Origin: Guillardia theta CCMP2712
Lineage: Eukaryota; Protista; Cryptophyta
Assembly (NCBI RefSeq): GCF_000315625.1
Contig: NW_005434667.1
Coordinates: 1,045,061 to 1,109,060 of the forward strand
DNA: 64,000 bases
Direction: 5' to 3'
The number at the start of each line of letters is the position of its first letter. Position 1 is the stretch's first letter. The notes below the pieces were generated by a model, which saw only the letters and a list, made by a program, of their open reading frames with translations, was not told the origin of the DNA and made no database searches. Shown here one piece after another: positions 2,749 through 7,001 of this stretch. Both the position numbers and the translations under genes were made by a program.

Positions 2749-3182
2749 GGTGTCGAAGGGAGCAAATATCGTAGATGGTGGGGTGGGGGGTTGCCCCTAA
2801 ACCCCATTGGGGTTTTACAGAATGGCAAAGGATTGAGAAAGGAGGGGTGGTAGAGAATGAGGCACAGTGATGAGTGCGGACGGGTGGTGGGGTACTCGAA
2901 TTGGACGCGGCACGGGCCGCGTCCAGATTCAAAAAAAATAAAAAAAGAAACAAGAAAAAAAGAAGAAAAAAGAAGAAAAAAGAAGAAAAGAATTTCAACA
3001 TTCCCCCACAGTGACAAGATTTCGTCAACTCCCTGACGATTTTTATAATATATTTTCATTCCCCTTTTGTATCAAATAAAATCTTTTTAGCAGTCAAAAC
3101 TTTTAAGTATCCAGTACTCATTTAAATTATTTTTGAATCAAATCACAATCAGTCTGATTTTAAAAAGATAAATCTCGGTCAC

Positions 3183-6100
3183 ATGGACAGAATGCTGCCG
3201 GCAGCGGAGGACAGGATGCGGCGAGAAATGGATAGCATAGACGAAAGAATGTGAGCGACACGTGTCATGACATCTCATATGACCATGCCGTATCTCGCAC
3301 ATAACATAGCATCGCATCATATGAATCATATTCAACAGGACGGAATGATGTGACTTGAAGCTGCAGGTTTAGAAGACAGAAGATCATTGTAGCCTTATGC
3401 TTTCTGTCTCTCTTCATTGGGGTTGTGATTAACGAGAAATGTGCTTCTGTCGACTATATCAACGGATATACATCAGATGGCTCTACTGTTCCTGTTCCAG
3501 ACATCGGCAATGTTCCTCGGAGCTGTGATTCTACCCTTGGGTCCAACTTGAAATATCTCTCGACTTTGCTAGCGATCGTGATGGTTATTTTCATGGTAAG
3601 GACAGTAGATATACAGAGCCCGCCTATCATGATAAATTATCGCAGATCATGCATTCAAAAGATGGCCACGGGAAAGCAAAGATCGTTAGAATCGTTCAAA
3701 AGAAGGCTTTTACTCTTCCCAACCAAATTCTGAGTGCAGCTATCATTTGTCTGGAAGTGGTCATAGTCTTCGTCCACATAGTAAGTCTTGCTGATAAGAC
3801 GTCAATTCTGTAATGTTCATCTTTTCAGCCTCCAAAGATTCAGAAAGATTTTCAAGTCCAAGTCTTGGGAGTGACGATATACTATAGATTTGAGTCTATA
3901 GCTTGTGCGATCATGATTGCAAGGCTGTATCACTCCGGAAAACTCTTAATAATGTTTGCAGAACAAAATTACTTCTCCGCCAAGAATTCGTTGCTAATGC
4001 AGGACATGAGTACGTTCAGGCAGATTCAAGATCAACCTTTATTGCGTCGAGCATTGGCCCTGAAGCTCCTTATTACTAGACATCCGATATACACGCTCCT
4101 GTTCTTCCTTTGCCATCTTTTCTTCTCACAGACTTACTTGCTTCGAATAGCTGGTAAGAGATGTCTGAGAATGGAGAAAACGTCATTGTGTCTGATTGGA
4201 TTCATCAGAGGGACCTGCTTATCAGCCTCACAGCAAGTATTGGGCAGACCAGATGTGGGTGATAGTCACGCAGGTGAGCTTTCGTATGCGTTGCCATGTG
4301 CTCATGCTGACTGGTCTTTCAGGGGACAACAGGGGACGGCACGTCGCAGCCGATGACCCACGTGGGGAGGCTTGCAGCAGTGATTGTCATCGTTTCCATG
4401 GCAATCATCCTCGCCTTTTTAACGTCTTCTACGACGCGAACGCTGCTGCTGTCGAATCAAGAAGAAGTCTTGCTTTCAAAGCACAAACGCAATGAATACC
4501 TGAGTGTTGTGATTAACTCTGCGGCGAAGATCATACAGCACTGGTGGAGAAATCAACATCTCTATCGCAACACCCAATCCTACAGGGGCGGACGGACGCA
4601 AGATAGACAAAAAGCGCAACGAAACTTGGAGAAACTCAGAGTTGCGAGAAACTTGGAGAGGATGAGAAATTCGAACAAGAGCATGCGGAACGTGCAGGAC
4701 CGAGAGTCTTCTCCTCGTCCCAAGTCTGTTGATCAAACAAGAGTTGGAGGAACTTCCTCAAAATCCTGGGACTGCCTCGCACTTTTCAAGCAAGAATCCT
4801 ATACAACAGATGTCGCAGAGAAGAAGACAATGTTGCGAAAAGAATTCCTTCATGCCGTCCATGTCCTCAAACACTTCACGCAGGGAACGGAAGGAAACAT
4901 TCTGTCTAGCCTTGCTGCCATGATGCCAGCAAGTGGCTCGCCAATGCGGGAGAGCGTCAGAGGGTCTACACGAAATGGTCACTCAGTGACGAGGAACAGC
5001 TTCCGAGGTCAGAGAAGCCTAGCGGCTGGATGGTCCACCAAGGAGAGGGAGTCGAGGACACCGCAAAGCAAGGCAGGACCGGAGGGAGTGAAACTTTCTC
5101 TCCCTCCTCGACGCAGAAATGAAGTCGAGAACGATCTGAGCGATGACTCAGGTGTCTCTCCCGCTACTTACCTCCCTCTCAACCTTTTCCCTCTGAATGT
5201 CTCTGCCACTTTGTACTCTCTCGTCAACTTTCCACCTCATGCGTCGATATGGACTTCTTTCTGATTTTCTTGTTTCCACAGAATTTTCTCCTGCTCAATC
5301 CTTCTGGCAAGCCCATCCTCTGCGCGGTATGAATCAGGTGAATCAGGTTGCCGACGATAATGTCGAAGAAATCAAAACCATGCTGTCACGCATCGAGTCA
5401 AGGATGGATGGCATGCAAGGAGCCATCAAGCTGCTGAATCAGAAGTTTGATTCGCTCATGGAGCAGCAGTACCTGATTCTCACCGAGAAGGAGCAGGAGC
5501 TCCTCGATGAAGAGCAGCTGTCGGCTGCTCGATCTGAGACATCAGAGAACAAGTTCTTCGGGGAATTCGCCGGCGGCATGCGGCCCAACTTTCCCTTCTC
5601 ATCGGGTGGCATCGTGAGGATGCAGTGCGAGGCTCGCCCCACGTTCACGCGCGACAAGTCGGAGTCTGACACAGAGCTTGACACGTTCATCACTGACAAC
5701 AGCGCCATGGCCAACACAGACAGACAGATGCAGCCCAAACGGATGTCAGATACTCTACCTGCCCGCACCACCAATGGTCCCCTTGGGAATTCTAACACTC
5801 TTCCTGCCCGTACGGCCAACGGCCTGAGGGCTAAGACTCCTCCTCTCTCAGCAGCCGCTCCTTCCTCTGCTCTCCCAGCAGCAGCTCCTTCCTCTGCTCT
5901 CCCAGCAGCAGCTCCTTCCCCCAGCCCTGCAGGCACGCCCAACGCCGGAGTCAATGACCTTGAGGGTGCGCCAGAACGATCAGGTGAGAAATTCCTCTGC
6001 CTTCTCCTTCCTGACCCCCTCCAGGTCCTCAAGTCAGTCACAAGCCAATTCCCTTCCTCTCCCCAGAGCAGCCGGACCTCGTCCTGGTCGGAAAGTCTCC

Positions 6101-6855
6101 TTCAACTCGTAGGCAGGGGGGGGCGGAGCTCCACAAGATCACTTCAGTGTCTGGCAACCGGACGAGGCTGCATGCTAGGTTGCAAGCAGAGCTTGACCTC
6201 CGCCGCCCTCCTCGCCGCTGGTTCATGCTTCAACAGAACCTCTCCACTGTCAACGTTGCGTCCCCTTCCTGGGTCCGCAGCAGCGACAGAGGAGCTCGGG
6301 ACGGCAGCAGGGAGCACTTCACACCGCCATCCCCATGGGTGAGCTCGCAATCGCCGGGCAGCAGACAGCAGTCTCCCAGCATCCCTCCTCTACGTGTGGA
6401 CATCGCAACCAGCCAACTCAACGTGGAGAGGCAGGTGGAAGTTCAAGAGCCGTCGGGGGCAGCAGCAAAGGGGCAGATGGGGGAAGGAGCCTCCTTCCAG
6501 CACAAACGGACGTCCGTGGGCACACCAAGGGGGGAGGCAAGGAAGGAGAGCGCGAGGGGGAACGAGCACAAGGGCGAGCAGGGCCCCGTGCCTCAGCTGT
6601 TTGTGCATGAGTTGGGTCAGGCTCTAGATCGCGCAGGTAATGACTCGCGTTGACCTCCTACGTGAGGAGGACCTGACGGTCGCTGCGCTAGAGGCCCGCA
6701 TGAGAAGCAAGAGGTTCAGCAGTACCCCACCTGTGCTCGGCTCCTACCGTCCTGGGAGTGCCGCGAAGTTCCTGCATGGAAAGCTGAGCTACAACGTGCT
6801 GCTGAACTCGGATCAGATCAGATCATCCAAATCTTCGAGATCCGATCAAGCCTGA
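3183..6855 (+). CDS. SK/KCNN-like six-transmembrane cation channel with long low-complexity C-terminus
   Basis: Spliced segments LEVVIVFVHIPP (S3), IMIARLYHSGKLL (S4), ALKLLITRHPIYTLLF..YLLRIAE (S5), WADQMWVIVTQ|GTTGDGTSQPMTHVGR (pore), AAKIIQHWWR (CaM/IQ-like) and a coiled coil (~5360-5500) parallel the KCNN motifs. ATG at 3183; introns include 3251-3366, 3596-3645, 4274-4322. Confidence 0.85.
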
Positions 6856-7001
6856 AGCAACATTGTTGTACATCGTTGTGATTAAACAAGTCGACATGTG
6901 AAAACATGCTCTCTATTCACAAGCTAAAGTTCAACAGGCAAATGGGCTTCAAAGAATATCTCTTCATCAGAATGCACTTGATCATGGTGGATCTCTCCCT
7001 G

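Follow-up and report, generated by a model that had tools for sequence, protein, structure and literature searches.

An SK-like channel gene of Guillardia theta with a putative calmodulin-binding helix and aspartate in its selectivity filter

The window considered here is a stretch of 64,000 nucleotides from the cryptophyte alga Guillardia theta CCMP2712 (contig NW_005434667.1, positions 1,045,061 to 1,109,060), and positions are given within it. Its plus strand carries, at 3192-6881, the gene GUITHDRAFT_133458 (P0023; XP_005840062.1, EKX53082.1, UniProt L1JXI1), which encodes 1006 amino acids and is listed publicly as a 'hypothetical protein' or a 'Potassium channel domain-containing protein'. 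The product has an SK-like scaffold of six transmembrane (TM) helices, in which the tyrosine of the K+ selectivity filter is replaced by aspartate, and the filter reads TTGDG in place of TTGYG. It is proposed, with a probability of roughly 0.45, that the protein is an intact, selectively maintained, pore-forming SK-like subunit, providing a calmodulin-regulated non-selective cation conductance and not a hyperpolarising K+ conductance.

The pore junction and the aspartate codon

The pore is divided by an intron of 49 nucleotides (4274-4322, plus strand, GT..AG, phase 0), located between the pore helix and the filter. Exon 5 (4209-4273) encodes the turret and the pore helix (EGPAYQPHSKYWADQMWVIVTQ) and ends with ATG TGG GTG ATA GTC ACG CAG, 4273 being the last exon base, after which the intron begins with GTGAGC. 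A branch-like CTGAC site lies within the intron, and a CAG at 4320-4322 precedes exon 6, which opens at 4323 with GGG ACA ACA GGG GAC GGC ACG, that is, G T T G D G T. After splicing, the pore reads MWVIVTQGTTGDGTSQPMTHVGR, with MWVIVTQ joined to GTTGDGTSQPMTHVGR at the junction. The filter codons T273, T274, G275, D276 and G277 occupy 4326-4340, and Asp276, at the filter tyrosine position, is encoded by GAC at 4335-4337. The first-pass annotation of the window had obtained the same TTGDG pore by removing 4274-4322, and the reading of the DNA, the annotated P0023 and a nine-exon model rebuilt from the window DNA all agree with it; the translation of the rebuilt model is identical to P0023, and short GT..AG introns occur throughout the gene in the reading of 3000-6000. 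The public gene model therefore already removes this intron and reads MWVIVTQ followed by GTTGDG. The KCNN string quoted for comparison in that annotation matches the SK2 sequence.

Alternative splicing that restores GYG and a base error at about 4335 had both been named as ways in which the prediction could fail. No GYG alternative is present in any reading frame of 4100-4400. The intronless paralogue GUITHDRAFT_109853 (P0001, locus L005) encodes the complete channel core within a single open frame, with the pore WNVLTQATTGYGMTSPATHIGR, and the spliced window protein is collinear with it and gap-free at every junction, including 4273/4323, which rules out mis-splicing as far as DNA evidence goes. 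DNA contigs of run X1, which may be the same sample as the assembly source, span 3118-4488 with zero mismatching letters. An independent relative, the metagenome contig L020 (ENA ERZ930064, PRJEB17505), about 3% diverged in exons, has the same GGG GAC GGC, together with a synonymous ACG>ACA change in the codon next to the shared GAC. A sequencing error at 4335 is ruled out to the same extent by the identical GAC in the X1 contigs and in the diverged L020. The motif TxGDGxxxPxTHxGR occurs once in the window, where 0 occurrences are expected by chance.

The RNA checks were made with no positive control, so the following null results do not show that the gene is silent; the runs also carry differing species labels. 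The raw RNA-seq run X5 gave 0 good reads for the gene among about 20 million sampled (five reads, all just 90-95% alike), the presumed RNA contig sets X6 and X7 gave no match to it, and among the listed sequence runs that contain the stretch none is on record as RNA.

A separate observation concerns the pore intron itself, which is identical in the window and L020 at 49 of 49 positions, while the remaining five introns together show 36 differences in 399 sites (9%). By chance, zero differences in 49 nucleotides would arise with a probability of about 0.01, and the unchanged intron may reflect a splicing constraint or chance.

Scaffold and calmodulin helix

The SK-like character of the scaffold follows from the agreement of sequence and structure comparisons. 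In a phmmer search of PDB sequences, KCa3.1 and SK2 are the best matches, with KCa3.1 first at E = 4e-6; its alignment runs through S5, pore, S6 and the HA helix, placing TTGDG opposite TIGYG and SAAKIIQHWW opposite SAARVLQEAW. From a family alignment of 10 sequences, AlphaFold2 gave a model of residues 1-400 with a predicted local distance difference test score (pLDDT) of 79 and a predicted template modelling score of 0.72. It contains S1-S6 with a hairpin between S3 and S4, two short S4-S5 helices and a pore helix; S6 is followed by two long helices that correspond to the HA/HB pair. When this model was compared with PDB structures by Foldseek, ranks 1-20 were all SK2 or SK4 (E = 1e-9 to 5e-4), and the next entries after a gap were Kv3, Kv4 and KCNQ channels at about 1e-2. 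The ESM Atlas neighbours are protist SK-like clusters together with KCa3.1/SK. The S4 charges are sparse (R173 and K179).

The profile searches set the limits of this assignment. P0023 lies below the Pfam thresholds of SK_channel (PF03530) and CaMBD (PF02888), its sole match being a sub-threshold Ion_trans_2 of 17.5 bits, and its paralogue P0001 barely exceeds the SK_channel gathering cut-off (32.0 bits against 31.8). The K+ signature T-x-G-Y-G is absent. Strict KCNN membership thus fails on the Pfam thresholds and on the filter signature, while the SK-type fold, defined by six TM helices, S4-S5 helices and an HA/HB pair after S6, is present in the model and is recovered by Foldseek. With its SK-like scaffold, the protein falls in a divergent subfamily specific to its lineage, and the six-TM channel of SK/KCNN type claimed in the first-pass annotation holds in this sense. 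The animal SK/IK channels (KCNN1-4; KCa2.x, KCa3.1) share the six TM helices, the weakly charged S4, the two S4-S5 helices and HA/HB after S6, and they provide the best matches in sequence and structure; HA is modelled onto the calmodulin C-lobe. In contrast to them, the Guillardia protein has about 17% identity, no Pfam SK_channel/CaMBD match, an IQ-type motif in place of the SK CaMBD sequence, TTGDG where they have S/TIGYG, and an additional tail of 600 residues.

The HA motif of the protein, AAKIIQHWWR, is IQ-like and aligns with the HA helix of SK4 and SK2; Q343 and W346 are invariant in the family alignment. The candidate IQ-like calmodulin site comprises residues 334-350 (VVINSAAKIIQHWWRNQ; 4509-4559). 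For the prediction of a complex, channel residues 305-400 were combined with G. theta calmodulin (L026:1495-1935:-, 147 amino acids, lacking only the exon with the Met). The score was 0.62, compared with 0.01 for the best of three controls; a mark of 0.62 is reached by 51 of 78 solved complexes and by 2 of 108 mismatched pairs. In the runs at least 48% of the contacts agreed and the partner pLDDT was at least 75. The modelled interface joins channel residues 334-350 with calmodulin residues 80-146, the C-lobe, and the HA helix probably holds the C-lobe as in the SK arrangement. The retention of a calmodulin-binding-like helix, as claimed earlier, is consistent with both the alignment and this model. 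In the calmodulin gene itself (L026; G000:C26:149324-149722, minus), the 147-codon body forms a single exon; its start Met must sit on a tiny upstream exon, because the acceptor ...tttgtag stands directly before GCT GAA CAA.

The exons of the plus-strand gene follow this domain order. Exon 1 (3192-3250) holds the annotated start Met and the cytosolic N-terminus, and a further in-frame ATG is present upstream at 3183. Exon 2 (3367-3595) encodes S1, the S1-S2 loop and S2, exon 3 (3646-3780) the end of S2 to S3, and exon 4 (3829-4153) the S3-S4 beta-hairpin, the weakly charged S4, the two short S4-S5 helices and S5, with the helices placed by the AlphaFold2 model. After exon 5, exon 6 (4323-5151) encodes the filter, S6, the HA and HB helices and the start of the disordered tail, according to P0023, phmmer and the model. 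The tail continues in exon 7 (5282-5983), where a coiled coil is predicted and an AAAPSSALP repeat occurs, and in exon 8 (6025-6636), which encodes the low-complexity C-terminal part; exon 9 (6817-6881) contains the stop codon.

The SK-like family, selection and the origin of the aspartate

The assembly searched for paralogues comprises 87 Mb in 669 contigs, with the window on contig 7. An S5-pore-S6-IQ core is common to roughly 20 or more SK-like loci of G. theta, and relatives are found in Hanusia and in transcript contigs. The shared family core includes INE-C in S1, YRFES in S4, EGPAY in the turret, DQxW in the pore helix, P-x-TH-GR after the filter and IQxWWR in HA. P0023 keeps 13 of 13 invariant columns of the family alignment A2, and on this sequence evidence GUITHDRAFT_133458 belongs to a cryptophyte expansion of SK-like/IQ channels. 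Overall, it is 28-30% identical to those full-length TTGYG relatives with which it was compared; over S6-IQ, identity to its closest G. theta paralogues is about 40-45%.

The filter separates the window protein from these relatives. Position 276 is Asp in P0023 and Tyr or Phe in the other nine rows of the alignment; the filters of the G. theta paralogues are TTGYG or (T)VGYG, and those of relatives in the exhaustive representative search are TTGYG, TVGYG or TTGFG. The transcript-derived P0014 has a near-identical pore helix (EGPAYQPHS..WDQMW..TQGTTGYG). The closest homologue outside Guillardia, L054 (P0024), shares 45% identity with the window gene over S5-IQ, compared with 36-37% between L054 and P0001 or P0014. 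A short tree of S6-IQ joins L054 to the window gene with support 91/73; the pore of L054 is QTYLLRIFEGPAYQPHSVYVWDCLWVIFTQATTGYG, that is, TTGYG. Since all close relatives have Tyr or Phe and L054 has TTGYG, the alignment indicates that the Asp is derived, by one TAC to GAC base change in the Guillardia lineage. Relatives encode the Tyr by TAC or TAT, and a single transversion converts TAC to GAC.

The first-pass annotation had named a lack of conservation in orthologues as a refuting outcome. L020 has the GAC at a shallow divergence, and no other GDG was found among the inspected K-channel-like loci of G. theta, the representative library matches and a pattern scan of metagenomes. The exhaustive representative search shows one protein per 50% cluster, so that a Hanusia phi orthologue could hide under P0003. 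Word-indexed protein searches, bounded by their word and length filters, gave just 1-2 matches each. When JGI metagenomes were scanned with the protein, they yielded no relative. The degenerate DNA pattern for TxGDGxxxPxTHxGR gave 18 matches in metagenomes, all due to chance; they lie on GC-rich, apparently prokaryotic contigs and have no S6-like hydrophobic stretch after the motif.

The comparison with L020 also describes how the gene has evolved. The two sequences differ synonymously at 43 codons and nonsynonymously at 23; neither a stop nor a frameshift occurs, and the sole exonic indel, of 27 nucleotides, is in frame and lies inside the AAAPSSALP repeat of exon 7 (5850-5930). For codons 1-352, the channel core, the Nei-Gojobori method gives a synonymous divergence (dS) of 0.094, a nonsynonymous divergence (dN) of 0.006 and a ratio (omega) of 0.066, with p = 5e-10 against neutrality; the five nonsynonymous changes in the core are all conservative. 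The tail evolves faster (dS 0.085, dN 0.020, omega 0.23), introns differ by about 8-9% and the upstream region by 17%. The codon pattern indicates that the gene is functional and that its core is under strong purifying selection with the Asp in place. As the comparison spans a short time, it shows the gene to be functional, not the Asp to be ancient.

Other members of the family depart from the consensus filter in their own ways. The pore region of L002 (G000:C62:369826-370074 and upstream) is split by two introns; when spliced, it reads MWVILTQATTG joined to YSSSVPKTHIGRM, giving TTGYS with the last filter glycine replaced, a parallel to the GYS paralogues of trypanosomatids. In L006 (G000:C62:411804-412085, minus), the exon after the pore intron begins (x)-E-G-K-M-F-P-Q-T-H-A-G-R-F, which by spacing places Glu at the Tyr position, while the pore helix and the first filter residues fall into an assembly gap (a run of N), leaving the motif incomplete. 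Descent of this acidic filter from a common source with the window gene was considered and rejected, as L006 is not its sister on the short and weakly supported S6-IQ tree. The SK-like/IQ paralogue L017 (G000:C180:51090-52031, minus) has an open frame of 766 amino acids without any GYG, and its pore is WFVMDTALGLPVGEVDITPSTSFGRF. In L055 (G000:C44:354494-355399), the pore region WLALLAMTTSYYGDLAPITHYGR is followed by TAG, and either an off-consensus filter (TTSYYG) or an intron not removed in this reading is present. L013/L014 (G000:C27:514263-516041) is a tandem two-unit SK-like gene whose two pores carry TVGFGD and TPGAGN, respectively. Metagenome open reading frames of the P0006/P0025 cluster, which are relatives of the nearest clade of the window gene, read MWVVFLAGGSAGGYASPPKTHIGR; a GYA filter and intron read-through in the frame call are both conceivable.

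The predicted pore and its alternatives

The proposed mechanism starts from the resemblance of the filter to that of the Bacillus cereus NaK channel. The two have the same T-x-G-D-G-x-x-x-P pattern of identical length, with Pro four residues after the last Gly, so that TTGDG-TSQP compares with TVGDG-NFSP; the second filter residue is Thr against Val, and the residue after GDG is Thr against Asn. The NaK-like filter of the first-pass annotation is confirmed in these terms. In NaK, only sites 3 and 4 are present and sites 1 and 2 form a water-filled vestibule; the channel is non-selective, it binds Na+, K+ and Ca2+, and D66 governs external Ca2+ binding (PMC3082925). This pattern is the basis for the predicted loss of sites S1 and S2, non-selectivity and Ca2+ binding at the outer mouth of the Guillardia pore; by analogy, that pore is expected to discriminate poorly among cations and to carry an acidic ring on its outer side. 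Replacement of the tyrosine (TAC to GAC) would remove or loosen the outer K+ sites S1/S2, and in a homotetramer, the simplest form, four Asp side chains would ring the outer mouth. Such a pore would pass Na+ and K+ with little discrimination and would bind or pass Ca2+. In sea water, its calmodulin-driven opening would produce an inward Na+ and possibly Ca2+ current and depolarisation, the opposite of the SK output. The channel is probably no longer K+-selective. The fuller claim, that this is a natural Ca2+/calmodulin-gated non-selective channel on an SK scaffold, in which a single Tyr-to-Asp change inverts the electrical sign, is tentative and on balance doubtful.

Kinship with NaK exists only through the P-loop superfamily. 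NaK is a prokaryotic channel with two TM helices and no calmodulin site, whereas the Guillardia protein is a six-TM eukaryotic channel; no NaK entry appears among the PDB matches shown for phmmer and Foldseek, and GUITHDRAFT_133458 is not a NaK family member. Precedents for such an evolution among K+-channel relatives are CNG (TIGE), HCN and UNC-58 (PMC11513965). CNG channels (TIGE-TPP) have an acidic residue at the Tyr position of GYG on a six-TM K+-channel-like scaffold, and their pore is non-selective, Ca2+-permeable and Ca2+-blocked (PMC3082925), but they have a shorter filter, are gated through a cyclic-nucleotide-binding domain and belong to a different subfamily. The K2P channels UNC-58 and TWIK1, with TCGYG and TTGYG first filters, are natural filter variants that are Na+-permeable constitutively or conditionally: UNC-58 is depolarising in vivo and TWIK1 shows dynamic selectivity (PMC11513965). 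The Thr at filter position 2 of TWIK1 is common to the cryptophyte subfamily; these are dimeric two-pore channels that keep the GYG tyrosine and are not regulated by calmodulin. The trypanosomatid KCa2/3-like channels (TbK1/TbK2, TcCAKC) have an SK-like core and an IQ motif just after the last TM helix (PMC3283738, PMC6974456). They come as pairs of GYG and GYX (GYR/GYS) paralogues (PMC3283738), and canonical members beside off-consensus ones are likewise found in G. theta, where L002 is a GYS paralogue. In contrast, the trypanosomatid variants change the last Gly, with no Asp reported at the Tyr position, and belong to a different eukaryotic supergroup. In this comparison the architecture is closest to SK/IK and the predicted pore to NaK or CNG.

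Several points weigh against a calmodulin-regulated non-selective conductance. The authors of the UNC-58 study stress how difficult it is to predict filter variants from sequence (PMC11513965). NaK is a distant two-TM channel and the K+-selective NaK2K is its double mutant D66Y + N68D (PMC3082925); with two changes made there, a single reverse change on an SK scaffold may not recreate the NaK filter. In the trypanosome SK-like TcCAKC, Y313A abolished the current (PMC6974456), and Tyr-to-Asp could equally silence a homotetramer. GDG is kept across a shallow divergence alone (dS about 0.09), and run X5 and contig sets X6 and X7 hold no usable RNA reads for the gene. The favourable score for calmodulin may partly reflect model memory of solved IQ/SK-calmodulin complexes, and the complex model says nothing on Ca2+ gating. 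The residues W266 and T270, counterparts in the present alignment of KcsA W68 and T72, which hold the tyrosine, are retained and could keep the Asp in a K+-channel-like conformation.

The last point leads to an improbable alternative, in which the protein is still a K+-selective SK-like Ca2+-activated channel that tolerates the Asp with its four-site filter intact. Heginbotham et al. reportedly found in 1994 that the aromatic side chain is not strictly essential in Shaker. Motif variation such as GFG and GLG is compatible with K+ selectivity (PMC3283738). Yet the literature search gave no K+-selective GDG channel, the sole characterised TxGDG channel has no sites 1 and 2 and is non-selective (PMC3082925), and the aromatic cuff is unlikely to accommodate a charged side chain. 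Somewhat less improbable, though still clearly unlikely, is a non-conducting or dominant-negative member, for example a calmodulin-binding regulator or trafficking partner that has kept its fold and IQ site. K+ channels are silenced by many replacements of the GYG tyrosine, Y313A of TcCAKC among them (PMC6974456), the runs examined give no RNA support, and purifying selection shows function, not conduction; nevertheless, the glycines and both threonines of the filter are kept, as are the Trp of the pore helix and the S6 residues, which is unexpected for an unused pore, and the resulting motif conducts in NaK.

The leading rival, itself rather unlikely, is an obligate heteromer. Here the Asp-filter protein would not conduct alone and would co-assemble with a canonical TTGYG or TVGYG SK-like paralogue, so that one to three Asp in the filter ring tune selectivity, conductance or Ca2+ block. 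The many G. theta loci with the same S5-pore-S6-IQ core speak for it, as do the off-consensus paralogues (TTGYS, TPGAG fused to TVGFG, Glu at the Tyr position); one of these variants is already joined covalently to a canonical unit. In Trypanosoma brucei, TbK1, which has no conserved filter, needs TbK2 for currents (PMC6974456), and trypanosomatids keep KCa2/3-like GYX paralogues beside GYG ones (PMC3283738). Against co-assembly stand the low identities to the TTGYG relatives and nearest paralogues given above, and a long private tail whose own coiled coil suggests self-assembly; no partner, co-expression or linkage was seen. Finally, an artefact, be it a misread base at 4335, an incorrect splice or a pseudogene in decay, has very little probability left and is already largely refuted. 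The search for RNA evidence of the 4273/4323 junction found none, which is all that favours it; the same codon occurs in the DNA contigs and in the independent diverged L020, the splice is collinear with the intronless paralogue, and an omega of 0.066 with an undisrupted frame against L020 rules out a decaying pseudogene.

As regards novelty, protist SK-like/IQ channels, paralogues with off-consensus filters and K+-channel relatives turned non-selective are known. The new part, as far as the literature search reaches, is GDG on an SK scaffold, in a protein that is unremarked in public databases. The literature search found no paper that names GUITHDRAFT_133458 or any TTGDG/TIGDG filter. The earlier statement that no example had been described therefore stands for the literature on GDG with an SK scaffold; it is narrowed by the spliced gene model, which was already public, and by the off-consensus filters described in protist SK-like/IQ proteins (PMC3283738).

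If the protein is silent or strictly heteromeric, it would mainly be a further filter-variant subunit like TbK1. If its pore is non-selective, it would be the first of the SK family to depolarise the cell on opening instead of hyperpolarising it, and a natural mirror image, in a eukaryotic six-TM channel, of the NaK-to-NaK2K experiment. As TTGYG paralogues and a near-orthologue are available for swaps, it would then offer a clean natural test of the share of the filter tyrosine in K+ selectivity, and, as a candidate for a Ca2+-activated cation conductance, the protein is compact. Were it also gated by Ca2+/calmodulin, a marine alga would possess a Ca2+-activated depolarising conductance, possibly admitting Ca2+, built from the parts of a K+ channel.

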